Both the position numbers and the translations under genes were made by a program. From the NCBI GenBank assembly GCA_001642005.1, contig LWCA01000192.1, forward strand, positions 1 through 41,710: DNA of 41,710 bases, in the 5' to 3' direction. Shown here in pieces: positions 5,155 to 40,571 of the stretch. The stretch comes from Intoshia linei. Lineage: Eukaryota; Animalia; Orthonectida. The notes under the pieces are model-generated. The model made no database searches and was not told where the DNA came from. It saw only the letters and a list, made by a program, of their open reading frames with translations. How positions within the stretch are numbered: the stretch's first letter is position 1; the number at the start of each line of letters is the position of its first letter.

Positions 5155-8100
5155 CAGGTAAAAATTTTTACTTTTACAAATACTATGTATACATATTTGT
5201 ATATACTTGTATGTTAACACTTTAACACCCATGAAGTGTGCCTGTGGTATATTTTTTGTGTATATTTTTGTAACTATACTTTACATTTACTTCACTTTAC
5301 ACATATATTTGTACATTACTTTTTATCAAAATAAATTTAATTGAAGTATGTTATTGATTATTTGTTATAAAATCTTGAATATTGGACAAGTTTTATGTAT
5401 ACAACACAATCCAGGAAATGTAATTATGTTAACTTAGTATATGGATAAGAAAACAGGAAATGGACATTATATTAATGTTTAAATACATACAAAAATTTTA
5501 CAATGATATTTTTTACAGTAAAATAACTAACAAACATATTATTACATTCCATATAACCGGAATAAAAATTTCAATCGGAATAAGTGACGACTTCACGGTC
5601 AAAAAAGCATTTTAGTATTCATATTTTTTTTCAAAATATTTTATTAAAACAAAAAATGTGAAATAATTAACAATCAGAAAATTAAAAAAAAATTCTAATA
5701 GAGCTTATTCCAGTTGATATAAATACAAAAGTTCAACCCGAGAAATTCAAGCATTCCCGATGAAAAATAATTTTTAATATATTATCAACCAATATTTTGA
5801 TTAAAATAAAAATTTTAAATGTAAATATTGATCTTACAATTTAAAAAAAAAATGTGCAGTGAACGTCTACACATTTCCAATAAAGAAATATGGGTGGAAA
5901 TCTATATAATCCATTCCTTCGTAATTTTTATCATTGCTACGCAATTTTTAAATTTTAAATTATTATTTTTAAAACATTTTGAATAAAATTTAAATAGAAA
6001 CTAAACAACGAAACTAAAAACAACTTTGTTAATATCACTGTCAATGTCTATTAACTGTTAATGTCAACTTTTTTATATTTATTACAATCCAATGGAAATT
6101 TTGTAAAATTCGACTAAAATGTGTTTATAAAGCTAAGATTCGGTTAATTATTAATACATACAAAGTAATTGGTATTTTTAAGTATTTATTAAATTGGTAC
6201 TGAATATATATCATCACATTGAAAATGACAAAATAAATTTTTATTATTTTATTTTTTCTGGAATTTATGCTATTTATGACTATTTTTAGGTTGGACCGTT
6301 TTTTCTTTATTTTTAAATGTTAAACAAAAAATTAAGATGAAATAATTTACTTTAAAGTAAAAAGTAGTGTGATGTGATAGTTCCACCTGTAACAAATTTG
6401 GGAACCACTCCTTTAAAGGATTGATAATAGTGAATAGTAGGATTTTTAAGTTAGATTTTCAACGTGAATTTATTTTTTAAGTATAATAAAAATGTGCTCT
6501 CGGCAGAGCTAGGTCCTGTTTGTACGTAGTATGTAAATTTATTTTTTGGTAGTATAAAAATGTTCCCTCGGTAGAACTAGGCTACGAGTATAATAAAAAT
6601 GTGCCGTAGTTGTACTTAGTACATTACAGTCAACCTAGTTAATATATTATACATATACGTATAACGGTTAATTATAATTATAATGATTATATCTATTGTA
6701 TAAGGAATGTAATTATTTAGCTCGTAAATTTATATTATTTTTAAAATTTTTATAATTTTCTATTTATGATTTCAGCTAGTAATGATTAATATTTTTTTTA
6801 TTTGTCTTTTTCCCATTGCGCCTTTAATATTGTCAATATAAATATTTAATTAGGATTATCGTTATAATTCAATAATTTTAGTGTGTATTATAATTATACT
6901 TTTACATTTTTTAATAAATTAACATTTCGACTTATTTACTAAAAATTTTAAATATTTTTAATGCAAAGTTTTATTCATATTAACTGAAGGGTTAATAAGT
7001 ATGAAAATAATTTTTTATTTAATAGTTATTTGTAATGCAATCATTGAATCATTATTTTATTTTAAAATTTTTTAAAATACATGCATTACTTGAAATGATT
7101 TAGTCTGTAATAATTTTTAACTTAATTTTTATTATCTTATTACTGTTGAATATACAAATACAAATACATTATAAATAATATTCTAGTAGGTAATTGAAAT
7201 TTTGAAATTTTTTTATTGTAATGGTGTTGGATGATAATTTTTTGTTTATATAGTGCGACCATAAGTACGTTATTTTATAAAGGCACAGTGCCAATAACGT
7301 ACTTTTAACGTACTAAATAAAGTTATGAATTTAAATTTTATATTACAAATTATATATAACTTTTACTTATTTTTACGTATATATAGTATATATTTTAACA
7401 TAAACCATTCAAATTCAATATTTATCACCATTCTACTTTGTTATTAGTAAAACTCAAGTTAATTGGATCAACATACAAAAATGTATCACAATTTATAACA
7501 AAATAAATTTAATTAACAAGATAAATCGAGATAAAATGTTCAATGAATTTGTTACAGTTGATGTATGTTTAAAAAATTCTCCTACTATTCCTCCTTGGAA
7601 GGATTTGTGTGATAATATCGATACTAATGGATTCAAAAAATTAATCCAGTTTTATTATTCTCTAAATTGCTCAAATACATATATAGAAAGAGTATTTAGT
7701 GTTACTAATAATTATTGGACAGAACATAAATCCAACCTTAGCTTAAAAACATTAAAATCTGTCATTTTATTTCGAGAAAATTCAAAGGAAAAATGTACTA
7801 ATGTTTATAAAAATCTGTTAAACGACATTTAAATTTGTAAAAACATTAATTCTAGCAATAAATACATATTTCATTTTCAGCAATTACTCATGGTTATCAT
7901 AAACTTTATGTCTCAATTTAGTTATTGTCTAGTTACACAATTTTTTTTATATATTTTTTACATTTTCGTTTCTAAGCAATATTAGTACGTTAAAAATATG
8001 GTCGCACTAGTTTATATTAACGGTTTCACATTTTATCGTTGTATTTTGATTTTTTTAAAAAAATTATTTTGTATATTTTATTTATTTTTCTTGTTTTTTA

Positions 8101-10773
8101 TTTTTAAAATCACTTGAAAGTTATATAAAAAACATTTAAAAAATTATTTATCATCAAATGTTATACTAAAGGCTTTATTTAATAGCCATAAATAAACCAA
8201 CTCTTAAGGAAAATACCATTTTACCCATAGGGTTAATAAAACTGGATTTTTCTTTTTAGTGTTGGTAAAACTAGAACTTTCTATAAAGGGTTGGTAAATT
8301 AGATTTTTAGTAAAAATGGTTGGATTTTTGAAATTTTAGTAAAAATTTTTGAATGATTCATATATGAATCATTAGATGTGAAACCGTTAATAACATAAAT
8401 AATACATGGTAATTATGAAATCATAGAATGTAATTAAAATTATTTATGTACATTAGGGGTATTTCATTTGGACTTTATTGAAATAAAAGAAATTATCTGA
8501 CTAGGAATAATCAGTTTCTAAGTAAAAATGCTACAAAAATATAAAAAGTCAAATGTTTTTTTAGGGAGTTAATCAATTTCCAGCGTAAAATTTTTTTTGT
8601 CATAAAACGTTTTACCTTTCCAAATTTGCTATTTTTGTATCTTTTGTTGAGTCACACGTTAATGTTATATATGTTATGTAGTTAAAAAATTGTAAATTGG
8701 TTTAGTATTTTTTATGTAAAAGTGGTTTTAGTATATAAAACAATTATAATATACAAAAAAAATAATAATAATAAACAAAAATCAACATAAATTGTATATT
8801 TAATAAATTTTACAAAAAAAGTGGACTTTCGTAGATCAGTTAAATAGCAAAACTGTGGTCTAATAATTTAAGTAATGACTAAGAACTACCAAATGTAGCG
8901 ATACTGAAAAATACTTTTAAAAATTTTAATCCACACGGGACACCTTACTTTACATGTATATTTTTAGTGTGTAAATATCACTTTTAAATTCAATTTATAT
9001 ACACTTACTTTATAATCACTTTTTATATAAATATCAATGTAATATGACGTAATTATTTATAGTAAGTTGTAATATGATAAATTTTTTTTTATATTATTAT
9101 AATAAAATCCATCTGTTTTATACATTTAATTTAACAAAATAAATAAGAATAATATAAACAATAATAATTATTATACATTATAATATATCAATCGTTATTT
9201 TTATTATTTAGTTAGTAATACAATATTCCAAAAAATATTTAATTTAGTTTAATAATTGGATGAATAATGTTACAATTAAATTGAAAAATTGTATATAACT
9301 GGAGAGGCAAACATTCACCGGATTTCAATTTTTTCAGAACAAAATAGAGCAATATAAGATTTATTTCAATATAAATAAGCATTATCTCAATGAGATAAAC
9401 TATAGAGAGAATATTGTATTCATCCATCATAGTGATAATATATAATATTTATATTATAATTATAATAGCAATTTGTAAATATATAATTATTAATTCTAAT
9501 GAATTTTTCACATTTTTTTTTATTATATTTTATGTACAATTGTATCTCAAATATTTTTTTTATTTAGTCCGTAATATATAAACCATATTAATTAATATAC
9601 AGCATTGTTTATATAATAACTTGTTTGTTTTGTACTTTGTGCTTTAATTTCATATCCTATTATATTTATATGTATATAACATGATATGCAATATTTGCTT
9701 CTGTGTGTTACCGTTTATTTCAATAGCTACTAGTCTTAGAATTTTATAAAGTCAACATTTCAATTACAGTTTTTTCCGGGAGTCTTATCAAAATAAATTT
9801 CAACCATATAAACTCATATCTTACGGGTCAAAAAGCCCAATCATCCTTTTTTTGAAAATCAAACGAGTTCGAGAATTAAAAAATATATACTCTGATACGG
9901 ATTTTAAAATCATAAATATTATGTTAAATTTAAATTTAAAAAAATATATCTTCAGGGCCAAAACCACAAATTACCCGTTTTTTTAATGAAAACGGCCCTA
10001 GAATTTAAAAAAATTACAGGTGATACAGTTGTATCCTGTTAACAAACACACAAAAATTTCAATCTGAATAAGTGACGTCTTTAAGGTCAAAAAAACAGTT
10101 TATTAAATTAAATTTTCAACGTGAATTTATTTTTTTAGTTGAATAAAAATGTGCACTCGGCAGAGCTAGGTGCTGTTTGTACGTAGTACATAGATAAAAA
10201 TGATAATGGATAAAAAAAGACAAGACAGATATAAGAATAATCAAAAATGTAACATAATAGTCAACCTAGTTTAAAAAGTTAAAAGTTAGTTATATAAAAA
10301 ATTATATTTTAAAATGCATTCAAAGTTTTACTTTGTGTGTCACGGCAAAAACTACTGTATACTTTAATATTATGAACATTGTAATTAAATTATTAAATTA
10401 TTACAATGGTGTAAGCTCTCCTTGGTCAGGGTTAAATAATAAATTATTTTCAAAATTCTTTTTTTATTTTACAAATATACACTAAATTTAACAAATTAAA
10501 CGTTGATAAAAATTGAACAAAGATACCTAGAATGAAAATTAAAAAAGTAAGTTGTTTAGTTATATACGGTAATTAACATAATACTTTGTACACCATGATA
10601 TTTATGTATGTGAATGCACACTAGTTCGTATTTGTTGCTTATTAGCGTAAATTGAGTTGCATAATAGCTCGTGTCTCTGTGAACAACACTGTAATAAACC
10701 TGAGACAGTATTTAAGGTCCTAGAATAAACATCAACATTATAGCGATATTTTATTATAATCGTTATTTAGAAA
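5155..10773 (+). CDS. Micro-exon block 1 (APMFIFLVSFTIFLIYE)
   Basis: Exon starts: 5155 CAG, 6721 CTC, 6776 CTA, 6882 TGT, 7026 TTATTT, 7104 TCT, 7187 TAG, 9063 TAAGTT, 9212 TTA, 9469 CAATTT, 9568 TCC, 10560 TTATATACG, 10771 AAA; each is flanked by ag/gt. Confidence 0.7.
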
Positions 10774-13700
10774 GTAAATTATTACATACAATGTAAACCA
10801 GAGGTGGGGAGAGAGTCCGCCTACTGAACAATTTGAAAATTATTTTATATTGATTTTTAATTTTAATGATACGTTTATATATTATCCTTACTTATTATAT
10901 ACATTATATATACAACATATTACAATTGTAATATGCTACGTAATATTTGTTTGTGTGTGTGTGTTCGACTTTATTTCAATAACTACCAATCTTAGCATTT
11001 TATTAAGTTTACATTTCAGTTACAGTTTTTTCCGCGCGTGATAATAAGATAAATTATAACTTCCCAAATTCACATCTTACGGGTCAAAAACCCCAATTGT
11101 TTTTTTTTTAAATATCGAACAAGTTAGAGAATTTAAAAAAATATATACGCTGATACGCATTTTAAAAGCATAAACATTATCATTAATTTAAATTTAAAAA
11201 AAATTATATCTTTAGGGCCAAAACCCCAAATTACCCTTTTTTTATGAAAACAGCCCTAGAATTTAAAAAAACTACAGTTGGTACTGTTGTAGCCTGTTAA
11301 CACACACAAAAATTACAATCTGAATAAGTGACACCTTCAAGGTCAAAAAAACAGTTTATTAAATTAGATTTTCAACGTGAATGTATTTTTTGGTATAATA
11401 AAAATGTGCCCTCGGCAGAGCTAGGTGCTGTTTGTACGTAGTACATAACAGTCAACCTAGTTAATTATAAATAATGATGATATAAATTTGTGATAAATAC
11501 AAATTGGAGTCTATTGACATTGTAAATTAAATTAAATTTAAGTTTTCATTTTCCATTGTAACCTGAAATTTTAATAAATTTTATTAATAAGGAAATTTTT
11601 TTTGTCAAGTCACTACAACCTTCTCACCTAAAGGTTCTCGGCTTTTTTTGTAAACTAATGTATACATGATTAAGTATAACATATTATATTTATATTATAT
11701 ATATATTATTTATAGTATATTTTGTAGCCTACTAATATGAATCATATACAGATAGTATTATTATAATATATATTCAACCGTAACAATGCGTAATTGTTAA
11801 AAAAATAAGATATTGTACTTTGTAAACAACTGTAAAATGGTTTCTATCTGATATGAATAACAATGCGCCAATCAATTTTTGTATGATTTGTATTGTATTT
11901 GTTCAATATGAATATCACAGCTAAAAAATGTATTAATTTTTATTGACAGGCATACATTAAATTAATAAAATTAAATATTACATATTATGTATCATAATAA
12001 CAGAAACCACTGTACGTCTAAATTTTAATATGATCTGTACATCAGGCGTGTCAAACTTGCGGCCCCTTTCAAATTCAATTGCGGCCCGCCACGACTTCGT
12101 AAATGTATATTTACTATATTATTAATGCTAATAATGTATGATATAATATTTATATTATGAAATATTCCAGATGAATTGTTTATCATCATTTGCACATCTT
12201 TACTGCGATAAGATCATATTTAATGATATCAATGATACGATTAAAATCATATTTAGTTCCACAATTTTTAAAAATCCGTGAAAGTCTTATCAAATTAACA
12301 TTCTAGTTTTATTATTCGAACATTAATTTAAAAAAATCAATCTTGCAGAATAGATACAAAACCACAAAAAAAAATATTTCGCTTCTAATTTTTAGGATAA
12401 AATTATCACACAAAAATTAAAAAGAAAGAACTCGCTACGTTTACTCCGTAATGGGCGATGATAATCTGGATTATCCATTAAATAATTAACTAATATTATA
12501 ATATTAGCACAACTGACTGAACAAATTTATCAAAAATTAAAAAAACAATGGCGCTCGAACTAAAAACATTGATTTCGATTATCTGATTATACATCACTTT
12601 TAATACACACTGTGTATTTGACAAAGATCTCGATTCATAGTATAATGATTTCCAAAGGTGATGCTATAAAAAAATTTATGATGCGGCCCGCCACGTAGTT
12701 GAGTTTGACATGACTGCTGTAAATTGTATACTGTACATATGTATATGTATCAATTTATCATTTAATGTTTATTTATTCCACTAGAGAGTAATATTAAAAT
12801 AATTTTATTAGAACAGAGGATGGGGAAGTGGGGCCTTTATGGCAAATTTTCAATAATTTTGTATTATAAAAAAAATTAAAACATTTATAATACATAATTA
12901 TTTATACAGAATATATAGTATACATATAATTATACATATAATATATATTACATACATAGTATTAATAAAACCATACAGAAGATTTTTGCAAAATGTTGCA
13001 TTTTTATTCTACTTGATCCGTAATAACATCATAAATCGTCTTTATATCGTTTTGTAAATGGTAGGGTAAACTAGAGATTTTGAACTAAAAATATATGTGT
13101 ATATAAAAATGAAAAAAGTTAATTGCATACAATTATTAATATCAGTCAAAGATATTGCCGAAGAATATTTCTGTCAATTTTCTAAATATAATACATTTTA
13201 TTTTCATCTTAACGGGTTCGAAGAAAAAATAAATTAAGCGTGTAAATTTTATGGTCCATTGAATGGAAAAAGTCACATATAACAGTTTTATCGCTGCACT
13301 GAAAAAAATGATTTTAAAGAATTCTTAGCTGAAATTTGAAGCGCTTTGCGGAATTTTTAAAATGGCGTCTACGCAAATTTTTATCTAATTTAATTATTAT
13401 TTTGTTTTATTCTCATTTTTAATTAATTACTCAACTTTTTCCCAGTCTGGACTTAATTTTTAAAATTTTGGAACATCATAATACTGTATACATGTTATGA
13501 TTCATTACTTGATATTGTAGTACAAAATTCAAGATATGATAATTAATTATTTAATAACAATTTAATTTTTTTTAATGAAGTCATATTTTTATACATTTTC
13601 AAAAAATTCGTTGAGACTTAAGAGTCTAAATTAGTGTCGGTTCTGCTCAAATCTGTTATTATTATTAATTCAATATGTTATTCTATGATGTAAATGATAT

Positions 13701-16700
13701 GTAATAATTTGAATTGTTTTTATCATCATAAAATGTGAAATAAAATCTCATAAAACTACACTTGTAGAAATGATATTTACATTTTTAATATATATTTCTT
13801 AATATTTGATAAATGTACGTAAACGATATTAGATTTATTGAGTTATCATTTCGGATTACACTAATATTGAATATTTTATACATTTACTAAAAAAATTAAA
13901 TATATTATAAAAAGTTTGGCGACACACTAACGTGTCACGACTCTCGACAAACCGTTTGGAAATCACTGATCTAACGGGAGACAGTTTTATCAGAAATGTC
14001 ATTGACATTTATTTTTTTTGAGTTGTATTAAAATTATTTTATTTACATAAATTTCTTAATGTGATAGTTTTTTGATGTTTTATCATTTTTATTTATCATC
14101 AAAACTGGGAAATAACTACGTTATAGGTAAAAATACATATGGATGCATGTAAACGTGATAAAGTGGCATAGCAACTTAAAAATATGAACCCGTTTATTTA
14201 AAAAACTAAGTTCTTGGACATAATTATAATAGTTTATTAATTAGTATCATAACTATTCATTATGTTAAATTTACTCAATTTTTAACAGACAGTAATATTT
14301 TTTTATATTTATTATATTGTTATGTGTAGTATATATATGATATATATATAATGTTACAAAATAAATATAAAAATATATATATTAATGAGTATTTTTATTA
14401 TTTAACATAATTGACACATTTTAATTATAATTAGTTTGTAAATCATTTAATTAAATAGATATTTAAGATATAAAAAAATATTGTTTGTTATATAGTACGG
14501 TGTCACCTCTTTTTTAAATTTTGAGGTTGTGATGGGAAATTAGAACTAATTGTGTGTATTTTTAAAATATAAAATCTATTCCGCCATCAAAAACCTTAAC
14601 ACTACCTATTCGAGTTGCGTTTGTAAAAATGTTAAATAAAAATTAAACTGAACTTTATTTGTAGAAATAATTATATAATGACATATCCATGGTTATTGGT
14701 TGTTATGTGTAAGTCATCATATTTAATGATATCAATGATATAAATTTTTTTTAATATTTATTTGAAAGATTTTTTAAATATATTTCTATAAATCATTTAT
14801 TTTGGGTTTTAGAGATGGTTAAAATCCTCTAAAAATCTAATAAATACATACAGTAAAGTGTCCTTATATGCACACTATGTATAAGACTTATAGACAATAT
14901 AATAAGTACACACATCACACATGAAATTTAAATACAATGAAGTCTGCTTATAAGTTAAAGTGGCCAAAAAAATACGTACTACAGTCAAAATCTAACTTAA
15001 AGAAAATGGCAAAACGTTAAAATCGCATTTAACGAATATGTTAATATAGATATATTAGAAATGTGCTGCTACTGCTGCTGTCTACTTTCCCCTCGAATAT
15101 ATAGCGTTAAATATTGTTATTGTGAAGTATTCTTAATTTTAAATAAATTGACAGATTGATAACTAATTTTCCTTGATTCTTAGATAAGTGTGACACCCTA
15201 ATATACGGTGTATGTTATTAATAGTAAAAACATTGAAATAGTCCGTAATATAATTATTTATATGTATTTCTAATATATTATTTTTAAATTAACATGTAAA
15301 CAAATTAAATTACAATATGGAGATTAATTATTAATTTTTTAGTTAGTAGATCATTAATTTTTATAATTTTATGACATTGCATTCAATGTATGAATAGTAT
15401 TCATACAGATATATTGAATATATCATGTCACTGAATTGAGAGAGTTTAATTTCTTATAACTTAAGTATTCATTATATAGTTTGTAATTAGTATTGTTATA
15501 TATTGTATGATATGTATTATAATCTATTTTCAATCTTCGTTGGCTTAATTTACTGGATACAGTTACCTGTGACAAGGCGTTTATAATGTTGTACAGTAGA
15601 ATCTCCTTAATCTAAAGTGCAATTTTGATTCAAAACAAGGAATTCTTTAACTACAATGATTATTTACAATTTTTAATTTGACGTTTTTATGACTCTAATA
15701 AAAATAAATAAATATAAATGTATTCCAAATAACGTTTAACAGCAGCTAAATCATTATATATGGAATATCGAACATCGATACAATTTAATTCTCTATATAT
15801 AAGATTAACTAAATAAATCATAAGTAATATTCATTCTATGTAACACTAAATTTTAAATGAAAAAATTTCGGACTAATAAAATTAACAAATAATATAAAAT
15901 GTAAATAAAATAATTCAGATATTTTCAATTTCAATTATAAAATTCATATAAAAATGAACATGTCAATATTTAAAATGAAGAGTATTTCAATGAAATTGAC
16001 TTTAACAAAAATGTACTTTTTTATATAGTAACTATATGGAAAGAAATAATTAGGTTCACAACTAAGAATTATTCAATGAAATTGACTTTATATTAAAGAG
16101 ATTCTACTGTATTACGTAGTGGCTAGAAAAATACGTACTATCACTTTTAGTTTATTTGGAATAAATTTTTATTCTTCATCATGGATATGTAGTTTTGGCT
16201 TTACATTTAATACCAAATAAACTAAAATTGATAGTACGTATTTTTTCTGGTTACTTTATATCACGACTAAATCTTATTTTATTCAACTGATTTTACTATG
16301 GAATAGTTGCATTGTATACTATTTAATACAATTATATTTTAGTCAGTAAATTAGATTATAAGTAAAAATAAATATGTATATTGCTTATTATCAAATTTAT
16401 ATATAACATTTAGTAAGTAATATCTTTAATAATATTTACATATGTTTATTTTATTAAATATTATTGTATATATTATGTGGTCATTTTCACCGAAATATCA
16501 CGATGATATCTCCATATACAAGGAATATAGTAAATAAAATTTAAGATATTTTAAATAGCGAGTAAAAATAAAAATATATTTATACCAAATCTGAATAATT
16601 AATTTATTACCAAAAATAATGAATATATTGACTAAAAATTTATATAATATTATAGTAGGTATGATGAATTTTATTCATATGTTCCACAAGAAAAAAAGCT

Positions 16701-28700: not shown

Positions 28701-31700
28701 CATCCACAAAGTTTTCTACGATAAAAAAAAAAAAAAAAAAANNNNNNNNNNNNNNNNAAAAAATCAATTTATGAAATTTTTACCCATATCTCTTTTTGAA
28801 AACGAGTAGACGTTTAATGCAATTTTTTTTAATTGTAGGATGAATATTTACATATTCATTATTAATTTTTATCATGCCATTTGAAAAATATAGTTTGATA
28901 ATATATTAAAAGTTATTTTACATCGGGAATACGTATATTTCTGAGATTAAATTTTTGTATCTTTATCAACTGGACTAAGCTATATCAGATCAATCTTCTT
29001 TTTTTAATTGTAGGACTGTTAATTATTTCAAATTGTTTGTTTTAATAAAATAGTTTCGAAATAAAAAAAATGAATACTAAAGTGGCTTTTTGACCTCTCT
29101 TCTCTTGATCTTTTTAAAATTCTAGGATTATTTTCATTGTTTAAAAAAAGCGTAATCTTGGTTTTGATATAAGTATTTAATTAATATCGTAGTCGGTAAT
29201 TCACTTAATTAAATTACTGTAGTGTACTGTCATAATTATCAATTTAAATTTTATTTAGCTTGTTATGTGAATAATTATTCATTTCTTTTATAAAAGATGG
29301 TATTTTATTTTTTAAATTAGTTCAATTCAATTTAATATTATATACTACATGTAGTCGTGTGTAAATTTATTTGAAATTTATTGTAATTATGAATAGGGTG
29401 TTCAGCTGATATTATTACACAAGCTGTTAATTAATCATTTTAGTCTGTAATTATTTTTTTATTTGTACATTATACGATAAAGTAGAATCTACATTGTAAA
29501 TGTAGATCAACGGTCTCTAATAAATTTGTTTTGTGATATCAACACAAAAATCAAATTTTTACGCCTATTATTTTTCTCGAACATTTTAAATTTTATTTTT
29601 GTGATATTTTTCATACTTTTTTAAAAAAATTCTCGATAAAATTAAAGGTTAATTACATAGATAATTGCGTATGTTTAATATTCATGATTTAATTTTTTAT
29701 TTCGTTAGTTGGTATTTATGCATAACAACTTTAACATATTTAATAAATAACTCTTAATATTTAATATTTTAGCTTGTAAATTTAAAGTTAATATAATAAT
29801 GTTTTGTACATTGTGCAATGTACAGTGTAATACAGATATACAGATTTTGTATACTAATTTTAAAAAAGCAGTTGGTAACATTTTTATTAGCTATTAAAAT
29901 TATAAAAATTAATGATATAATATTTTATGACATGGTATAATAAATTTTAAAATAATAGTGAGTAATGTTTTATTATTAAATTAATATAATTATTACTACT
30001 AAATGTTAAATTATAATTAAAAATTAAATACACACATAAACTGTATGTATAATTAAACTTTACCTATTATATTTCAGTCGGTAATTTTTTAATTTTATTT
30101 CATATTTATTAAATTAATGAAAAATTAAATTATATAAACCGAAATAATAATAATAATAAATTATTTTATATAAAAAAAATTATAGAAGGTAAAATCATCG
30201 TCTTTAATCATTGGATCCGCAGATCCTACCGTTTGCTATAAGCTTTTTATTAATGTAAAAAGTTTATTTAAAATATGTTGGAATATTTAAGTTTGGATTT
30301 AAATTTAAATTTGTAATTTTTACATGTCATTTAAAGTTGAAATCTGGATCTGAAAATAATTGTATTTCATACAGAATTTTCGTGAGTCAAGTTTATGTAA
30401 AAACTAAGTGGGAAGTCTTTGTATAATTTACCAGTACATTAGATTTAATTGTTAACATTGTTTTATTTTAGAAATTTGTAATTTTTATTTTTAGATTTTG
30501 TACCTAGTGTCGAACATACCGTACCCTCGACCCTCCTCGGATGGATAATTTTATTTTGTAAAATGTAAAAATGGAGCCTGATTTTACCAAAACTATCCTT
30601 GAATACCATAACCATTTTGTTTGTTACGTTTAAAATGTTAACCTTATAGCTCTATAGAGGTGGCTAAGGGCTATATAACACTACAAATTGTTTGTGATTT
30701 TTTTGTTAGGCATATTTTTCATTTTTAATGGCCGACAGCTGGCTAGATTCGCTTCTATTGTACCTTATGTTTTATTATTTAAAATAGTGAAGATAAGTAA
30801 ATATCACCATATGATTATTATATTTATCCAGAATTATGTGCACATATAAATTATTTTTTCAGTTATAATTTTAATTATGCATAATCAAATTTATACTTTA
30901 AGTCGATATTCATAAATTACGGTGGAACTTATAATATTATTCTTAATTTAGTTCAAAGTAAGTTTTGAAATTCTATTTTAATTATAAGCAGTCATTTATT
31001 ATATTTTAATATTTAGAAATATTAACTAAAGGTACACTAATTGCATTTTATATAAATTTATAATTTTTTAGTGGATGATAATAAAGGTAAATATAAATTT
31101 AATGATATGTAATACACATTGTGTATGATAAAGTGTTTAAATAATTTGAAACATTTTGTCATTTCCAATGACTCAATTACGCCGAGAACGTGACAGAGTC
31201 AATGCTAATTTGTTTTATAACTATGTAAAACTGTCCTCTTAAAATCAAATTATTGTTGTATTAATATATTTATTTTAGTAGGTAGTGATTATACATTTTA
31301 ATTTATGGCTTGTGTGTTTAAACCAGTGTTTCCCAACCCATTTTGCGTTATCGGCCATTTTTTAGAATTTTATTAAATATATTATTTTTATCGCCAAGTA
31401 AAAATAAAATTTTAATTTTGAAAGTAACGTTATATTATAGTATATATTTTATGCATGAACAAATAGATTTATTTTTTTTTCAACTAAATCAATTTTTCAC
31501 CAACAGTATGATCTTTTCCGCCTTTTGCGATAAGATGCCATTAATCCATTTTTATTTGATCATAAAATTATAATAATTGTAAAAATTTTATATTTATCGT
31601 CATATCTTTAGTATATTATAACTAGGGCGATTATTTTTTTAACTAGGGCAAATTTTGATATGTTCATAGACATCAAATTAAATCAACAACCTTAAAAACT

Positions 31701-34700
31701 TACATTTTCGAGTTTAATTCCTAAATTTCCAGTTTTTTAAAAATGAAAAAAGTCACAGAATTTTATAAAATATAAATTCTGGGTAGTTTTTAAAATCGTG
31801 AGTATCATAAATTACAACTTCAAAAACTTAAAATCAAATAAAAAGTGGCCCTCGATATAGCAACTGCTGTTTGCAGTATTGAATCTATTGTACTCCGAGG
31901 TACCTCTTCTGGAGTCTAGGCAAAAAATTTTTAAAATGGGAGCCTCATTTTTTCAAATTAAATATTAAAAAAAAATATCTTTGAATATTATAATTATTTT
32001 GTGTGTTAAATTTAAAATATAAAGTCAAGATCTTTAGAGAGGTTGGTAAGTACAATATGACACAAGCCATCGTTTTCGAAACAAATTTTTTATGGGCCTA
32101 CTTTTCATTTTGTAGGTGACCTCGAATTGGATAGGTTCGGATCAGGCTGTTTGTGCCAAGTACATAACAGTAAACTTTACTAGAGTTAGCGTGACTAAAC
32201 CAAGCTATTAATATTAATAATATTGTTCAAAATTAATATTAAATCAATCTAAAGTATTTATAATTCCAATCAATTCGTGAAATTTCCCTGGTCATTTCAA
32301 AATATCGCAGATTCCATCAAATTTTCGATGACCCACAAGTGGGTCTAAACCCACGATTGGGAAACACTGGTTTAGGGTACGTAATGATTCAATTAAATTA
32401 GTATACTAATTGGTAATTGTAGTTACTGAAAAATCAATACTTGTATCAATTCTATTTTAGAAAACTTGGAAAACGGTAAATTAAATTTTCTGTAAATTAC
32501 TATAAATTATGTCAAATATTTCATATTTCAATTTAGAAAGTTGGGATAACGGTAATAATATTAATTTATAACATAAAATTGAGATGAATGTGATTTTAAT
32601 CGTCCTGTATTCCAGTAAAATCATATTTCCGATCACTAGTTCTACTTGAGAAATAAAGAATTGAGAGGGCCTAGAAATTTAAAAATTAATGATGTATAAT
32701 ATACATCATATATCAATCATACATCAATATGCTTAAGATTTAATTACAAAGTGTTGGTCAAAGATATGTAATTCATACCCTAAACTCGAAAAAAAAGCTA
32801 TTGTATTTTTCTTACTTTTCGCATGAACGTATTAAAATATATAAATGTATATGAATGTGGATTTTACTCTAGGGAAATTTTTTTAGCCATATTTTGAAGG
32901 GGGTTTTTAAAGATATTTTTTTAACCATATTTTCAAGTGGTATTTTGTGGAAATTGAAGAAGTCACTTATTCAGATTGAAATTTTTTATGTGTCTTAACA
33001 GGATATAACTACTATCTGCAATTTTTTTTAAATTAGGGTTGTTTTCATTTTAAAAAAAAAAAATGTGGGGTTTTGATCGTAAAAATTATCATTAAATTAA
33101 ATCGTTAAATATACATTTATTGACCAAATTTTTAATATTTAATTTAGGCATGAATGAAATACGTAAATATAATAATCATTATAATAATAACAACGTTGAC
33201 TTTTATGTACTACATAGTACGTACAAACATCACCTAGCTCTGACGAGGGCACATTTTTATTCTACCAAAAAAAGAAATTCACGTTGAAAATCTATTTAAA
33301 AATCCTACTATTCACTATTATCTATCCTTTAAATGAGTTGTTTCCAAATTTGTTTCAGGTAAAACCTGGTTAGAATTGACTTTATTCTATAATAACGAAA
33401 AATATATATTCTTAAATACATATTTTTCAAAATGACAATATTAGATAGAATTTTTCTAATGGAATAAAAATACCTAAAATGATTAATATATCAATTTAGA
33501 GGAAATTAACGAAAGTAAATATATAAATTTATGATATAAATTGAAATTAATCTAAACTTGTCAAATATGTCAAAAAAATCATATCAAAACTCACAACTTT
33601 TGAGTCAGATGACGAATTCGGTAGTGAAAATTTTTTGAACGTTTTAAATCGATTGTATGTTTTATCCACCTAATAAATATATTACATTGCCCTAAATCTG
33701 ATTTATAATTTTTAGAGGTGTTTTTCTAATAATATTTTTAAATCACACCCAACATTTCTGATTCGTGATTGTTAAAATTTTTACATTGGAAACTTTGAGA
33801 ATGTGTTTATACAAATTTTATAGGAAAATAAAAAATTTTAACCAATTAAAGAGAAAATACTGTATTTTTAGTTTCAAACTACTTACAAAACATTACCGCA
33901 GGATTTTTTCTTTAGCATATATTACATAATTAATAAATTTAGATATAATTTTGATTAGTAAATTATCATAACTTGATATTGTATATAATATTTTATAAAG
34001 TATATTTAATAGAATAATTATACAATCATTTTTATTATATTTAAATTATTCTTATATTAATTTTAAAAGACTGTAATAATTCAATTTGATTTTCGTGATA
34101 ATTATTATTACTATGAATGCTCAATTTAACAAACACAACGTTACCTGAATTTTATGTTAATTTAAAATTTTAAAGAAGTTTAAGTACATTCCCAAATTTT
34201 AAAAAAGTTAAGGTATGTCTGTTTAATGTATCCTTTTATTTAAAATAATTAAAAATCCATTAGAGATACATTAATTGATAAGGATAAAGGTTATAATATA
34301 TAATAATATATTATAACCTCATAACAATAGTAGAGTCTTAAAGAAAAGAGATATAATACTTTTTTATTTTTTTTTACTTTTATACTTTTATAATATTTAT
34401 TTTTAATGAAGAGTTAAAAAAGGGATGAAGGTTAAACTTTATCCCGCTAATGTTCTCAAAATAAACATGTTTTTAGATTATTGTTTACAGAACATTACAA
34501 CTTACTCTATATTTTATTAAATCAAAAAAAAATCTAATAATATATTATTATCTATCATCCCTGCGAAAATAAATATTTTATAACCGTTGGTTGATGTTTC
34601 GAAAAATCATGAATATTAAAAGATTTTTTATATCATTTTCAATTTGAAATTTAAAGCTTTTGTTTTATTACTAAAAACTTGGCTTGGTCATAAAGTATTT

Positions 34701-37700
34701 TCCATCAAATGTATAATATTGTCATTGAAAATAATATAAATTACTATACTGGGGTGACTGTATTAATATAATAAAAACAAATGCTCCTAAAATGGAACAA
34801 TGGAGGTTTCCCAGTAAGTTTTTACAATTATGTTTACATTTACAATTATTTTGAATTTGAAAAATGTAATATTTCCGTACAAAATTATCAAATGTTTGTG
34901 TTGATTAAATTGAGGGTTGACTGTATTTATCTAAACTAATTAATTATGAAAAATCGTAAAATTCAGATACTAATTTAAGACACATAGCAAGTAAAATTAT
35001 ATTTAATATTATAAAATTTATGTATGATGAGACATCATTTGATGCGTAAAATTTCATTAAGTCGTAAAAAATTGGAATGTATGCTTTCTTGTGCGCGTAA
35101 ACATTGGATTTAATTGCATGGTTCAAAAATAAAAAAAATTTATTATTAATAATTTTGTACGAATATATTTTTACTGAGTTATACAATGGCAAAAGTGTAT
35201 CCATAATAATCTATATTATTGATAGATTATATATAAAAGCAAACTTTGATAAAATTACCATAGGAATAGAGAAGTCAATAAGTCAATGGCTTAATTTTCT
35301 ATACATCTTAAACTTATTGATGAAAAATTTGTTTTTTTATTACTTTTAATACTTTTTATTATTGCTTTTTTGGCTTTCTTTGGCTAATACATAATTGGTA
35401 TTTTTAAGTATTTATTAAATTGTACTGAATATATATTATCACTATAGGAGACTAAAAAGAGCACTTTTGAAATGATAAAACACGTATAAAAATAATAAAA
35501 TGTATGATACTAATTTTAATGATCATTCATTATAGCTAAGTGCATTATCTTTATGACATAATCGTGCTAAAACTGTGTTTTTTATATTTTAATTATATTT
35601 GAAATTGTTAAAAAACATTCATCAATGACATGTCATATCATTTTAGTGTAAAATAATATTTTGATCGCTTTACTCGTTTGTGTCTACTCTGATTATCACA
35701 TTGAAAATGACAAAATAGGTTTTTATAATTTTATTTTTCTGTTATTTATGCATAATTAATAAATATAATAATATAATAAATCAAATTATCAAATTTTCTA
35801 TGCCCAAAAATGAACAAATCAGACTCGTTAGTGCTTAACGCCATTTTATTTATTACATGTACTATATGTAATAATAATATGTAATAAGTATGTATGTTTA
35901 ATTACATTAAATATTTTTATTTGTCGTTCCAATTTTACAGTCTTCGGTTTTTGGAAACACTACCACGTACTGTACATTTATTCACTTTTAAAACAAATTG
36001 TTTTGTATTATTCTTTTTTAATCGTACTTTTTTATAGAAAAAGTTGCATTAAGTCAATTTTTTTTTAGAGTCAATAAAAAATTTGCCCTAATTATAATAT
36101 AATTATATATTGTTTTCACTGTTTAAATTACCAATATTATCAATTTATGTTATCTTTCTTAACGACTACAAACAGCATATCAAAATATTATTTGTATTTT
36201 CACGCTTTTAATTAATTAATTAGAGTTTTTTATACATAGTATATGAAATAGTACAGATATACAAAGTATATAAATGTATATAAAAATAACAATTGTTTTT
36301 ATTATAATTATATTATTTAAATATCCTTATTAAAGTCAGTAAGTTGTAAATAAAGTTAAGTTATAGTACAATCAATTACATTGATACATTTAGAAAGTAA
36401 ATATTTTGAAATTCATACAAATACGTATGCAAGTATATATAAACCAGTAAGTGTATGATCAAATTAAAAATTTAAATATATATTCTAGTTAGTAATAAAT
36501 TAAAATACATCAATAAATTGAACATTATATCAATTACATACATACAGTGCGCGTAATAAACATAGGAAACCCCGATTTATATTATTTTTTGGTCTATTAA
36601 CATTAATTTTCATGAATATTTCATCTCCATTAAAAAAGGAATTTAAAAAGTACGCTTGTTGATACCATTATTTTTCTTCTGCCACCTTTATATGAAAAGT
36701 TATCACACAAATCGCTAATTAGCCGCGCAATAAACATAGGCACCTTAAATTAAAATAATTTGTCTTTTCTCCTTTATTGACCACAACTTCTAGGCATCTA
36801 TTTTTCATTGTCAATACTAACTTTTCAATAGTATCTATATGGATATTTTTCCATTCTGTCAATATTATTTGCGTCAGCTGATACCTATTTTTAAATTGCC
36901 TGCCATTTTTGTATAAGGACCTTGCCAAAATTCCCCATAAGTTTTCTATTGGGTTAAGGTCAGGAGACTTCGATGGCCAGTTTATTACATTAACAGAATG
37001 TTCTTCAAACCATGTTTTAACAATACAAGAAGTGTGGATTGGAGCATTATCTTGTTGAAAAATGTAATTTGTACCATAATGAAAGTGAGCAAATGGAAGT
37101 AGAAATTCAAATAAGGTAAAAATATAATCCTCAGAGTTTTGATTTTTATTCAGAATCGCCAATTTGGATTTGCCTTTCTATGAAAATGCTCCCCAGACTA
37201 TTACCGATCCACCTCCACTTTGCCGCGTAAAGTAAACTTCTTTTTCCTTTCGTAGATCATGCCAATAAAACTGGAATTCATCAGGACCGTTTGATCAAAT
37301 CAGTCCAAATTGAATTTTTTTTTATCCGAGAATATCACAGAATTTTAATGTGTATCCAAATCCACGTATTTTCTGACAAAAAAAATCTTATTTTCTTTAT
37401 GAGCTTTTGAAAGGACCAGAGCATGATGTCGTTTACTCCATTGAAGGTGGGAACAATTACTTATTACCTGTTGAACGGTACAGAGCTTCACGTCTAATTC
37501 TGCATTTTGCATAATGTTTCTAGCTGTATATTGACCGCTTAAAGCCTCACGTATAATATGAAACTCCGTTCTTGAAGTAAGTTTCTTGGGCCTACCTGGA
37601 CTTTTTGACTTTCCATATGACTCTGGGTTGTGTATAAACCTCGATACCACATTTCTAGACCTTTTAATCTGCTTAGCAATGTATTTGTGTGATTTATTTA

Positions 37701-40571
37701 TTGTTTTTAATGCCATAATTTGACCTTTTTCAAAATCAGTTAAAAATACAACAAGCGTACTTTTTAATTCCTTTTTTAATAGAAATGAAATATTCATTAA
37801 AATTAATGTTAATAGACCAAAAAATAATATAAATCGGGGTGTCCTATGTTTATTGCGCGCAATGTATATTAAAAATATGTATAAATATAATAATATGTAT
37901 AAAATGGTTTTAATATGTGTTGTTACGATTCTAAGGAATCGTAAATCACTGAAATCGCTCGATGTTAGGAACCCGGAATCAGTAAAAAAATAACGCTTAC
38001 GTTTCTTTGGGAAATACGATAGTAATTAGTTTAAAAAAACTAAGTTTTTTTAAAATTAGATAAACTTGCTCAATATTATTTTTTTAATTTATTATGTATT
38101 TATATCATAAATAGTACATAACTTGGCATATAATGAGGAATTAAATTACATACTATTATAATTATGTATATATAATAAATAATATATATAAATAATAATT
38201 ATGTTATTATCTTATATATAAAATGAAGAGCTTTTTTTCCTGTCTAATGTATATACTATCTACAATGTATATTATACATACAATTATATTATTTTTATAA
38301 GTATACTATAAAATTTTTATTGTTAAAATACCATATAGTGCGTAATTTTTAAACTTATTTTATACATATAGTGGATCCACTATTAACCGCTGATTCCGTT
38401 ATTCACTAAAAAAACTAGTACTTTTGATTTTTAGTTTTTTTGTATAAAATTTTTACTTTTAATTTTTATTTTTTTTATATAAAACCTCCGTTATTCGCCA
38501 GTTTCCACTGTTCGATAAAAAATTTTTCAAATTAATCGAAAAAATAAAATAAATTGTATTTGCAAACCGCGAGTATATAGAAAAAATGTTAATATATCAT
38601 GATCTTTAAATTTGAAGAATTATATAACTTGTGATATGTGAATAAAATACCGTTTTCACTATTAACAACAGTAAAATTCATCTTTATAATGATATAAATA
38701 TGTATACTAAATTGATAAACATTTTCATAAAAACTGGGTCTATTATTCTCCAAAAATTGTGCATCCAGATTTAGGCAAATTCTGAAGGCTTCACTAAACA
38801 GACTAATTCGTCAATAATTATCTATAGTCTCTATATCAGTGCTTCCCAAACTATTTATGTTCATGGCGCAAAAAAATAAGTAAAAAATTGCGGCGCACTG
38901 TATACATTGCCTATATTTCTATCTTTAAAAATGTGTATTATCACAGTTGTTCTCAAACGTTTTTAATAAGGGTTCCCGTCAAATGCAATAATTATTAATT
39001 TTTTTATGATGAAAATTTTGAAAGATGATAATAATTACCGAAAAAAAATATTTTACACTTTGTTTTAGTGTATTTATAAAACGTATGTACTTTATGCATT
39101 AAAATTTAATGATTAGATAGACATTTTTATAATTTTAAATTATAGATCGTTAAAATAAATAATCAAAATTTAAAAAAAAACACAGATTCAGGTGCCGGCG
39201 CACCATTTGGAAGCACTGCTCCATATATACATATATACTGTATACTTTATAATATAGTACAGAGTTTATATTATATAATTATAATTTATATACGTTTTAT
39301 TTAGGATTAGGTATTTTATTTATTTTAAATAAATTCTCATACAATTGACAATCATCTTATATGTAGTTAGTAATTAAAAATATGTTACAATTTATTATAC
39401 GTTTTTAAAAAAAATGTAATTACATTGGACTACGATTATGTCAATGTACCATGAATTGAAATTGAATTTGAATGAGCCATTAAAAAATGGTTATGTGCTG
39501 GAAATCAATTTAAATCGTTTTCCATTTGGCAAAACGTTTTAAAAGTGATTATACTGTGTAAATTTTAAAGGAAGCTTTTGTAAGTTTTCACATATAAATA
39601 AATTTTTTATTTTGGGGTGTTTACCTGCACAAATAATCGTCAACTAAACATATTTTTCAAGTAACTTTCTATGAAAGAGGAGGGAATATCAATTTAATTG
39701 AATTAAGATTGCATAAAATAAAAATCGACTGTCAAAGGTTTATTTTTCATTTTTTTCGTAGTCTTTTGGAGAAATTTGATATTATATTTCTGTATTATAG
39801 TTAGTAATTTAATATATTTTAAAATTAATAACATTAGTATGTAACTAAATTATAATATTATATTTATATTATATTTATTATTATTATAAATGTAGATGGT
39901 TATTAAATTAATATTTATAATAATATTTATTTATGAAAAATGATAATAATCAAAAACAGTTGGTATATTATTTATGTTAACAGATTTAATTATGTATTAC
40001 AATTTATAATTATAATTAAAAAAGTATCACTGTCAAGTTACACCTTTCATGATTAAACATTCTGTTCATCATTATTCATTATACCCTACCATAAAAAATA
40101 GCACAATTAAAATTTTTATTATATTCAAATTTAGAAAATTTAACATATTATTAAGATTTCATGATTAAATAAAAATTCAACCTTTGAACTTTCGGAACAT
40201 AAAAAAATATAATTTAATTATAAATATATAAAAATATTATTTAATTAACTAAAATTATGAATAAATCTGTATTATATTGAATATGTAAATATGTATTAAG
40301 TTTCTAGAAATTTTATAACATATACGTATAAAAAATTACATTTTTAAAGGAAGTAATAAAAACTATAATTATAAATTATTTAAAATATACCAGACAAGTT
40401 TTATTTTTAAATATTAGTATGTAAATTGCTCAATTTCATTTAATGATATATTAATATTATATGTGAAAATACTTTTAGTCAGTAATATTTTGTTTATATT
40501 ATTATATTATATTATAATATAAATATTTACTTATAAGTTTTGGATATATCATAATAATTATTAAATAGTTT
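5155..40571 (+). CDS. Putative micro-exon gene (~105 symmetric phase-1 exons of 3/6/9/15 nt) encoding a multi-hydrophobic-segment protein of unknown family; 5' and 3' ends not defined
   Basis: Repeated (t/c/a)ag-NNN-gta(a) motifs on the + strand with AT-rich upstream tracts. The concatenation of ~468 nt is open in phase 1 and has stops in phases 0 and 2. The product has alternating hydrophobic and charged blocks. Confidence 0.8.
6330..6639 (+). repeat. 3' fragment of Helitron-like dispersed family
   Basis: Shares ttagattttcaacgtgaatttatttt...ctcggcagagctagg...acagtcaacctagt with the other copies; has an internal partial duplication. Confidence 0.65.
7251..8009 (+). mobile_element. Internally deleted hAT transposon with C-terminal dimerisation-domain ORF (7536-7832)
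   Basis: TIR tagtgcgaccata / tatggtcgcacta; flanking direct repeat gtttata(t); ORF motif CSNTYIERVFS..W...KSNLSLKTL. Confidence 0.85.
9640..10270 (+). repeat. Copy of Helitron-like dispersed family
   Basis: Collinear with 10880-11461 and with the reverse complement of 20013-21090; ends tcaacctagt. Confidence 0.7.
10880..11461 (+). repeat. Copy of Helitron-like dispersed family
   Basis: Ends in the hairpin ctaggtgctgtttgtac-gta-gtacataacagtcaacctag followed by T; no TIR or TSD seen. Confidence 0.7.
11752..18542 (+). CDS. Micro-exon block 2 (NKNIFLIFITIAMAKFN)
   Basis: 3-nt exons: 11752 ATA, 12785 AGA, 14289 ACA, 14435 TTT, 15242 TCC, 15343 TTA, 15480 TTT, 16343 TCA, 16414 TAA, 16559 CGA, 16656 TAG, 16756 CTA, 17261 TGG, 18131 CCA, 18232 AAT, 18349 TTA, 18540 ATT. 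Confidence 0.7.
12043..12716. mobile_element. hAT MITE
   Basis: TIR caggcgtgtcaaact / agtttgacatgactg; subterminal gcggccc motifs; TSD ctgtacat/ctgtaaat. Confidence 0.8.
15594..16109. mobile_element. Tc1/mariner-pogo type MITE
   Basis: TIR cagtagaatctccttaat / attaaagagattctactg with TA on both sides. Confidence 0.8.
16117..16257. mobile_element. Small foldback MITE
   Basis: ~40-bp inverted repeat agaaaaatacgtactatcacttttagtttatttgg / ccaaataaactaaaattgatagtacgtattttttct; a related terminus lies at ~14957. Confidence 0.65.
17316..18100 (+). mobile_element. Deleted IS630/Tc1/mariner element with DDE C-terminal fragment (17553-17801)
   Basis: TIR tagtgttttacgatctttcaagtcat / atgacttgaaagatcgtaaaattcta, TA TSD; motif YLPPYSPFLNPIDDVFSVWK. 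Confidence 0.88.
19200..19945 (+). pseudogene. piggyBac-type transposase relic
   Basis: Motifs YRMYWS, MTRDRFEDIKKYLHF, DRLYKI, FDNYFNS, GTMRKNR (~19808) and KWHDN (~19927), interrupted by stops and frameshifts. Confidence 0.88.
20013..21090 (-). repeat. Longest copy of Helitron-like family (reverse orientation)
   Basis: Begins actaggttgac (reverse complement of gtcaacctagt). It contains segments matching ~500-870, ~5530-5930, ~28760-29165 and ~32960-33360. Confidence 0.7.
21277..24899 (+). CDS. Micro-exon block 3 (YPIHDT[NVEVV]IIRVMFAV[VKY]AA)
   Basis: 21277 ATCCGA, 21404 TTCATG, 21912 ATA, 21997 CCA, [22770 15 nt, uncertain], 22910 TAA, 23158 TTC, 23338 GAG, 23433 TTA, 23526 TGT, 23661 TTG, 23733 CTG, 23800 TTG, [24389 9 nt, uncertain], 24761 CTG, 24897 CTT. 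Confidence 0.7.
25025..25642 (+). mobile_element. Non-autonomous hAT element
   Basis: TIR tagagtgtttaactt / aagttgaacacacta; TSD gtctatac/atctatac; remnant ASVERLFSA at ~25190. Confidence 0.8.
26056..28582 (+). CDS. Micro-exon block 4 (YDVFYNDRKHIELAYFAFEIMTSIKKK)
   Basis: 26056 ACG, 26150 ATG, 26228 TGT, 26315 TTTATA, 26385 ACG, 26468 ACAGAAAAC, 26532 ATA, 26581 TTG, 26654 AAC, 26739 TTG, 26787 CAT, 27176 ACT, 27233 TTG, 27306 CAT, 27416 TTG, 27480 AAATTATGA, 27960 CTA, 28102 GCA, 28222 TAA, 28503 AAAAGA, 28580 AAA. Confidence 0.8.
26844..27107. mobile_element. Degenerate hAT-like MITE
   Basis: Imperfect TIR cagggtggtccaaa / tttggatcactg; TSD unclear. Confidence 0.45.
28743..28757. other. 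Assembly gap (N run) after poly-A
   Basis: Run of n; additional micro-exons could be missing here. Confidence 0.99.
29193..34072 (+). CDS. Micro-exon block 5 (IAYVVFFAFVIEEILKIIQKILTKVDDNKVENLENESWDNEEINENIILIN)
   Basis: 29193 TCG, 29259 CTT, 29297 ATG, 29355 TCGTGT, 29444 TCT, 29709 TTG, 29773 CTT, 29872 TTG, 29959 TGA, 30078 TCG, 30186 AAG, 30472 AAATTT, 30788 TGAAGATAA, 30952 TTCAAA; 15-nt exons at 31017 and 31072; 31279 TAG; 15-nt exons at 32461, 32537, 33500 and 33943; 34070 ACT. Confidence 0.8.
31324..32369. mobile_element. hAT non-autonomous element
   Basis: TIR cagtgtttcccaa / ttgggaaacactg; partial TSD gttta. Confidence 0.7.
36336..40571 (+). CDS. Micro-exon block 6 (FKIIMRLVRSFFIYVGIFI)
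   Basis: 36336 TCA, 36394 AAA, 36448 TAA (weak donor), 36489 TTA, 38339 TGC, 39305 GATTAG, 39367 TTA, 39571 GAAGCTTTT, 39801 TTA, 39838 TAT, 39896 ATG, 39960 TTG, 40350 GAA, 40418 TAT, 40479 TCA, 40569 TTT. Confidence 0.72.
36545..37864 (-). mobile_element. Near full-length Tc1 (DD34E) transposon, transposase disrupted
   Basis: ~115-bp TIRs beginning cagtgcgcgtaataaacatagga, TA TSD. ORF 37345-37797 has HTH and GRPKKLT; VIFSD and VWGAFS lie between the ORFs; ORF 36719-37162 has QQDNAPIH..SPDLNPIENLW, with 34 residues between D and E. Frameshifts and one stop are present. Confidence 0.95.
38837..39218. mobile_element. hAT MITE
   Basis: TIR cagtgcttcccaaa / tttggaagcactg; TSD ctctatat/ctccatat. 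Confidence 0.8.

Follow-up and report, generated by a model that had tools for sequence, protein, structure and literature searches.

The DNA analysed here (the window) is the entire contig LWCA01000192.1 of the Intoshia linei assembly GCA_001642005.1, 41,710 nucleotides (nt) with 22% GC, which is contig C2698 in the numbering used below. Intoshia linei is an orthonectid parasite of marine worms. Most probably the window holds one protein-coding micro-exon gene on the plus strand, in which a signal-peptide exon (4069-4147) is followed by some 80-100 symmetric exons of phase 1 extending over at least 36.5 kb. About three quarters of the internal exons are exactly 3 nt long, and the remainder are mostly of 6, 9 and 15 nt. 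Direct observations are the pairs of splice sites with their phase, exon 1 and the fact that a family of such loci exists. As a whole, the locus is an extreme variant of micro-exon-gene architecture in a phylum that is new for it, a conclusion that is strongly supported in silico. An earlier reading of the same DNA (the original prediction) had described about 100 skippable phase-1 units and had proposed that they may generate protein diversity at single-residue resolution; its structural part is right, and its functional part is so far an analogy.

Splice-site pairs and exon lengths

Long open reading frames (ORFs) are nearly absent from the window, transposase remnants excepted. The first evidence for the gene is the spacing of its splice sites, obtained by tallying AG-N(L)-GT[AG] on each strand with every spacer length L between 1 and 30. 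The 3-nt spacer was found 112 times on the plus strand versus 29 on the minus strand, while all other spacers gave about 25-45 occurrences per strand. With the stricter pattern YAG-N3-GTAA the asymmetry rises to 66 versus 2, over a background of about 4, and the 68 matches to YAGNNNGTAA in the window compare with 9.0 +/- 2.8 (maximum 17) in 100 dinucleotide-preserving shuffles. The site types of these 3-nt units are TAG...GTAA in 59 cases and CAG...GTAA in 7, and smaller excesses were detected for TAG...GTAT, TAG...GTTA and AAG...GTAA, so that the window contains about 75-80 true 3-nt units. The sites flanking the triplets are near consensus, with TAG making up 89% of the acceptors and GTAA as donor. 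The GC skew is positive on the plus strand over most of the locus.

The original prediction stated that every exon is a multiple of three, a property that had been part of its own selection. This concern is answered by a length spectrum obtained with YAG/GTAA sites and no selection on length, in which the plus-strand excess is confined to exons of 3, 6, 15 and, weakly, 9 nt; no length between 1 and 30 nt that is not divisible by three rises above background on that strand. Exons under 70 nt whose length is a multiple of three, one of the hallmarks of micro-exon genes (PMC7653826), are therefore present at this locus as judged from splice-site statistics and not from transcripts.

Reading phase

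The coding phase of the array was addressed with a chain of 80 exons chosen by splice-site score alone, in which stops were then counted in each frame. The three frames contain 13, 10 and 1 stops, and in the open one every exon starts at codon position 2, which corresponds to phase-1 introns. When the order of the exons was shuffled, the phase-1 frame acquired a mean of 4.2 stops, one or none being reached with P=0.035. The sole phase-1 stop of the real chain sits at the junction of exons 27306 and 27480 and is abolished by adding the weaker TTG exon at 27416, whose donor is GTAT. The larger exons, judged independently of their junctions, tell the same story. Those of 6-15 nt with strict sites show 11, 6 and 2 internal stops across the three frames, with the lowest number in phase 1, and the six 15-nt exons at 31072-33957 have no phase-1 stop at all, nearly all of them being interrupted in another frame. 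Altogether, phase 1 is open over about 120-165 codons in DNA of 22% GC, in comparison with the 10-13 stops of the other frames. The phase-1 symmetry claimed by the original prediction is thereby borne out, and since the exons are also multiples of three, the skipping of any internal exon would preserve the frame, as it had stated. Its further point that the second codon base travels with the exon also holds, with T as the first base in 53-54% of the 3-nt exons of the window.

Gene model, first exon and predicted product

A dynamic-programming gene model was started at exon 4069-4147 and the minus strand was run as a control. On the plus strand the model takes up 78-99 internal exons, 58-74 of them of 3 nt, versus 6-23 exons with just one of 3 nt in the control, a result that sustains the estimate of about 100 units. 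By the operational definition of PMC7653826 the locus counts as a micro-exon gene, with those 78-99 modelled internal exons placed after a first exon of 79 nt and with 9-11 micro-exons within 734 bp at 26056-26789. The 3-nt, 6-nt and 15-nt exon classes are trustworthy; the few candidates of 12-24 nt are not, because the control strand yields similar numbers of them. The limits formerly given for the array, 6721 and 40571, correspond to real and strong exons (6721-6723 and 40569-40571), but the gene begins earlier, at 4069.

The candidate first exon encodes Met-Phe-Lys followed by a hydrophobic core of 12 residues, and it was called signal-peptide-like by inspection. No other ATG exon of the window that has a phase-1 donor clearly resembles a signal peptide, and strict 3-nt exons are distributed around exon 4069-4147 in a strictly one-sided manner, with none in the 4 kb upstream and 66 downstream. 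By the same inspection, this exon supplies the N-terminal signal peptide that is described for the micro-exon genes of schistosomes, whose products are secreted or anchored in the membrane. The predicted product would be a secreted protein of about 150-190 amino acids (aa) made from a spliced message of about 0.5 kb. It is rich in Ile, Asn, Phe, Leu and Thr and contains no Cys in a model that is incomplete at the 3' end; the 15-nt exons contribute an acidic block and the last stretch is hydrophobic. The many hydrophobic residues would be a consequence of the triplets that begin with T. A terminal exon candidate starting at 40596 was rejected as it lies inside a dispersed repeat with more than 290 copies, and the 3' end may lie past the end of the contig at 41710.

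The introns differ in length. Many measure 34-160 nt, and the long ones carry Tc1/mariner, piggyBac-like and MITE-like (miniature inverted-repeat transposable element) repeats. The exons and the features that lie between them are the following.

4069-4147, plus strand: candidate first coding exon of 79 nt, with ATG, 26 codons plus one base and a GTAAAA donor, ending in intron phase 1
4584-7189, plus strand: group 1, seven exons in the model (12 nt at 4584-4595; 3 nt at 5155, 6721, 6776, 7104 and 7187; 6 nt at 7026-7031)
5564-6316: dispersed repeats within intron 5158-6720
6530, plus strand: weaker 3-nt candidate, present in the 99-exon model only
7251-8012: possible element with short inverted repeats (arms 7300-7316 and 7982-7998)
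8427-10773, plus strand: micro-exon group, five of 3 nt and two of 6 nt
9673-10192 and 10929-11447: repeat copies in introns
12785-18542, plus strand: micro-exon group of 13 exons, each of 3 nt and each with strict YAG/GTAA sites
17553-17801, plus strand: DDE_3 transposase fragment, intronic
19508-19774, plus strand: piggyBac-like fragment, intronic
20013-25717, plus strand: group of micro-exons comprising some 10 of 3 nt and a 6-nt one at 21277, with doubtful candidates of 12-24 nt at 20013, 21057 and 25018
20331-21078: repeats in introns
26056-26789, plus strand: densest cluster, 9-11 micro-exons in 734 bp, mostly of 3 nt, with introns of 45-157 nt
27176-28652, plus strand: micro-exon group, 6-8 of 3 nt and one of 6 nt at 28503, including weak-donor exons at 27233 and 27416
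28742-28757: assembly gap of 16 N in a poly-A run, in the intron between exons 28650-28652 and 29193-29195
28758-29095: dispersed repeat directly to the right of the gap, matching window positions 5597-5901 and contig C970
29193-30188, plus strand: micro-exon group, seven of 3 nt and one of 6 nt at 29355
30472-33957, plus strand: block of larger micro-exons of 6, 9 and 6 nt followed by six or seven of 15 nt, acidic and Asn/Glu-rich in phase 1
34988-36491, plus strand: three 3-nt exons at 34988, 36394 and 36489
36719-37797, minus strand: Tc1/mariner transposase remnant in two ORFs, intronic (Pfam DDE_3 1e-13, HTH_Tnp_Tc3_1 8e-11)
38339-40571, plus strand: last group, 7-9 exons of 3 nt, the final one being TTT at 40569-40571
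40597-40890: MITE-like dispersed repeat of about 290 bp, of which the assembly contains more than 290 candidate copies that are 73-87% identical

Strict 15-nt exons number 7 on the plus strand of the window versus 3 on the minus strand. The assembly gap at 28742-28757 leaves the reading unaffected; physical continuity across it is unproven. Arrays of the same type, on the same plus strand and with equal density, flank it on both sides, the junction across it as assembled creates no stop, and exons of the same kind hidden inside it would not shift the frame, since all exons are multiples of three.

Some of the intervening sequences have features of their own. The possible inverted-repeat element at 7251-8012 contains an ORF of 98 aa (7536-7832) that has no Pfam match. 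Positions 16442-16529, in the intron that separates the triplets at 16414 and 16559, hold a second ATG segment whose start is hydrophobic and whose GTAA donor is in phase 1; its presence is probably due to chance, an internal alternative first exon being the other option. The repeats at 5564-6316, 9673-10192, 10929-11447, 20331-21078 and 28758-29095 occur in both orientations, are all intronic in the model and are shared with the micro-exon loci on contigs C970, C1697 and C2340. An annotation look-up with a transposase ORF of the window gave no record.

Proposed splicing of the array

A precursor RNA of at least 36.5 kb would be transcribed from the locus, and its introns would be taken out stepwise by intron definition. 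An exon of 3 nt is too small to accommodate the acceptor and donor complexes simultaneously, and introns would therefore have to be removed one after another. Every ligation would supply the 5' exon for the next donor in a manner that resembles recursive splicing with one triplet retained per step, the triplet completing one codon (bases 2 and 3) and starting the following one (base 1). In the recursive splicing at ratchet points of Drosophila and vertebrates, a near-adjacent acceptor and donor require the stepwise removal of an intron and the 5' splice site is recreated at each ligation. Ratchet points are non-coding and leave no nucleotides in the mRNA, whereas here one in-frame triplet would remain at each step, so that the likeness is mechanistic only.

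A genome-wide class of loci and the origin of the arrays

Similar arrays were sought in the whole assembly, which comprises 41.6 Mb in 3520 contigs. Two paired-motif searches returned 74 matches versus 43 for the control and 125 versus 36, and the clustering of these matches suggests that such arrays exist on about 25-30 contigs (C516, C1697, C1017, C1037, C1522, C2340, C2327, C970, C1593, C1428, C2828, C3096, C159 and others). Ten array contigs were fetched, and 8 of these 10 carry strong strand-specific arrays, with 16-43 YAG-NNN-GTA per 10 kb versus about 3. In the other loci, 230 strict 3-nt exons give 19, 21 and 3 stops across the frames, again with the lowest number in phase 1, which demonstrates that the phase rule holds on data outside those from which it was first proposed. 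Moreover, on C159 an exon that resembles a signal peptide and has a phase-1 end likewise precedes the array. Triplets of the other loci begin with T in 33% of cases versus 53% in the window. An all-against-all BLAST comparison of the 11 loci detected dispersed repeats only, the sushi-domain loci contain no 3-nt arrays, and a long phase-1 exon adjoining an array was not convincingly found in any of the fetched arrays.

Additional information on the origin of the arrays comes from three small contigs, C282 (1-2035), C3431 and C997, which are built of units repeated in tandem every 72, 145 and 159 nt or so, the unit consisting of an intron plus a 3-nt exon. Across 21 such units, conservation is 90-100% in the flanks with the acceptor and the donor, in comparison with only about 60% at bases 1 and 3 of the triplet. 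These contigs have the appearance of young micro-exon arrays, or of a satellite that arose from such an array, and their repeat unit suggests that arrays grow through tandem duplication of units made of an intron plus a triplet. No similarity between introns is detectable within the window, and the maintenance of about 75 exactly spaced site pairs in the absence of such similarity argues for selection on the pairs.

The splicing signals of the arrays are the AT-rich ones that are usual in this species. Ordinary introns of Hsp70 paralogs start with GTAAGT or GTAATA, end with TTAG and measure about 35-70 nt, and the signals and sizes of the micro-exon introns match them; one Hsp70 ORF of the assembly is intronless, and its product is 100% identical to the HSP70 protein of Intoshia linei at NCBI. 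The median intron of Intoshia linei has been reported as 57 bp (PMC6543705). The SL1 spliced leader is not present, which speaks against a nematode origin. Apart from the arrays, contig C3009 (56-2738, minus strand) carries a mitochondrial fragment with a cox1 containing 10 in-frame TGA codons (TGA = Trp) and, directly after it, a nad4-like ORF, both very divergent and AT-rich.

Alternative explanations and the strength of the gene reading

The reading of the window as a micro-exon gene has to be weighed against several points. Its exon evidence consists of splice-site statistics and not of transcripts, and the stop-free gene model is so partly by construction, the frame evidence being that of the unfiltered chains. 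A search of sequencing runs with exon 1 and its upstream region found one run of unknown kind and no RNA run. Model exons of 12-24 nt are no commoner than in the minus-strand control, and neither the 3' end nor a stop codon was found within the contig. Exon 1 is tied to the array by position, strand and phase only; it has no DNA paralog, matching elsewhere only through repeats, and the array at 25900-28700 also matches elsewhere only via repeats, so that the conservation of this locus is without paralog or ortholog support.

A separate matter is what the exons would be used for. By analogy with flatworm micro-exon genes, the locus could work as a combinatorial diversity generator in which 3-nt exons are often individually skipped to give a family of proteins differing by single residues at the host interface, an option that we regard as unlikely. 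In its favor, each skip of a symmetric phase-1 exon would preserve the frame, about 96% of the single skips are stop-free, skipping is documented for flatworm micro-exon genes whose products are secreted (PMC4015677, PMC7653826), and the young tandem arrays display variable triplets between conserved splice motifs. Intoshia linei is, in addition, a parasite. The original prediction proposed to examine whether stops created by single skips are rarer than chance, and this was addressed with physically adjacent strict 3-nt exons of the 11 loci. Stops arise at 1 of 159 junctions between real neighbours, at 4 of 111 single-skip junctions and at 13 of 305 pairings at a distance of three or more exons. 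Real junctions are thus depleted in stops (Fisher P=0.04), but single-skip junctions create stops at the rate of random pairings (P=1.0), and the expected rarity was not observed in this test, whose power is low and which does not refute skipping. As the depletion is confined to real junctions, it is only on the product of full inclusion that selection can be seen. The near-consensus sites beside the triplets (TAG 89%, GTAA) also fit efficient inclusion and are equally consistent with an inclusion that is possibly constitutive. Frame-neutral skipping is possible by construction, and the junction test lends no support to it. A wider proposal, that the loci on some 25-30 contigs represent a class of secreted-protein genes with tandem-grown phase-1 triplet exons that are combinatorially spliced at the parasite-host interface, independently of the flatworm strategy and in a far more extreme form, is likewise doubtful and, taken as a whole, rather unlikely.

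It is improbable that the locus is a decayed or non-expressed relic, either of a tandem repeat carrying TAG-NNN-GTAA or of a dead micro-exon gene. Tandem-repeat contigs with exactly this motif do exist, the locus is full of transposon insertions and its 3' end was not found, all of which speaks for a relic. Against this, the introns are mutually dissimilar and yet about 75 site pairs retain the exact 3-nt spacing, which implies purifying selection; phase 1 has stayed open over its 120-165 codons in a 22% GC context that puts 10-13 stops into the other frames; and the signal-peptide exon is intact and in phase.

That the locus is spliced yet non-coding, as a mirtron-like small-RNA cluster, a timer delaying transcription or splicing, or a set of ratchet sites for the giant intron of another gene, is very improbable, for although its short introns are numerous and in series and its acceptors abut donors as recursive splice sites do, recursive sites leave 0 nt and not 3, a single phase is open and is accompanied by a start codon with a signal peptide and by 15-nt exons that are open in it too, no exons of a larger gene are seen on either side, and the 39 short introns fold no better than their shuffles (mean z -0.06), which speaks against a mirtron cluster.

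Comparison with known micro-exon systems

The closest counterparts of the Intoshia linei gene are the micro-exon genes (MEGs) of Schistosoma, Echinococcus and Hymenolepis, where micro-exons with lengths divisible by three also come in series after a first exon with a signal peptide. Various studies have described signal peptides and hydrophobic products for these flatworm genes (PMC7653826, PMC10526429, PMC10399815), with exon sizes of 3-81 bp (PMC10526429), and their micro-exons, being multiples of three, are described as allowing proteins that are one residue apart through exon skipping (PMC7653826). The likeness to schistosome MEGs drawn by the original prediction is thus apt, as that same work describes both the micro-exons and the one-residue variants. 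Both systems have small (up to 189 aa), hydrophobic products that are secreted, which in the present case is a prediction; in both, the long introns are rich in transposons, the organisms are parasites and the genes are hard to annotate. However, about three quarters of the exons of the locus are at the 3-nt minimum, the exons number about 80-100 and many introns are short. The host organism also differs, as it is an orthonectid and not a platyhelminth, and MEGs are said to be restricted to platyhelminths (PMC4350168); membership in that group, which would call for a platyhelminth origin or a sequence relationship to one of the flatworm families, is consequently not supported here.

Another system with similar architecture is that of the bicycle and megacycle effector genes of the aphid Hormaphis cornu and other Sternorrhyncha. 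It shares with the locus an N-terminal signal peptide and small internal exons of the same phase; the presence of many small internal exons, nearly all starting from codon position 2, which characterizes bicycle genes (PMC9168663), is also observed in the window. Bicycle genes have on average about 17 exons and encode CYC motifs, while megacycle genes contain more than 100 micro-exons, with proteins of about 2000 aa encoded in 118 exons of about 50 nt each (PMC9168663). In contrast, the exons of the locus are mostly of 3 nt, its genome belongs to Intoshia linei, from another phylum and not from Sternorrhyncha, where bicycle genes are expressed in the salivary gland, and its predicted mature protein, in a model incomplete at the 3' end, has no Cys and hence no paired CYC (Cys-Tyr-Cys) motif. 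The host organism and the absence of Cys rule out membership among the bicycle genes, and the resemblance is one of analogy or convergence.

At the level of single exons, the splicing of isolated 3-nt exons has been demonstrated in flies and humans (PMC7392893, PMC8632122). Examples such as micro-Ex8 of Drosophila homothorax and the exons of human MAP4K5 and RPS24 (PMC7392893, PMC8632122, PMC12686416) indicate that spliceosomes can include an exon of 3 nt, but they are lone exons of ordinary genes and not dozens in series forming most of a coding sequence. In the literature searched, which left the Intoshia linei genome paper and DeMarco 2010 outside, no report was found that ties Intoshia or orthonectids to micro-exons or describes runs of 3-nt exons, and no MEG with a comparable number of exons was found.

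Implications

If transcripts confirm the gene, its coding sequence would be the most fragmented known to us, with about 60-75 exons of 3 nt, nearly all in series, and with many sister loci. It would mean that dozens of minimal exons can be strung together through intron definition by the spliceosome of a metazoan, and the locus would offer a natural system for the study of the limit of exon size and the order of intron removal. Standard gene finders and RNA-seq aligners probably overlook genes of this kind. The genome of Intoshia linei reportedly encodes about 8,700 genes in what has been called a 'minimal' animal, and this count would then probably omit a class of secreted proteins. After the MEGs of flatworms and the bicycle genes of aphids, the orthonectid arrays would constitute a third independent case of parasites encoding secreted proteins in arrays of phase-1 micro-exons, and the reason why parasites have such arrays would become comparable across phyla.

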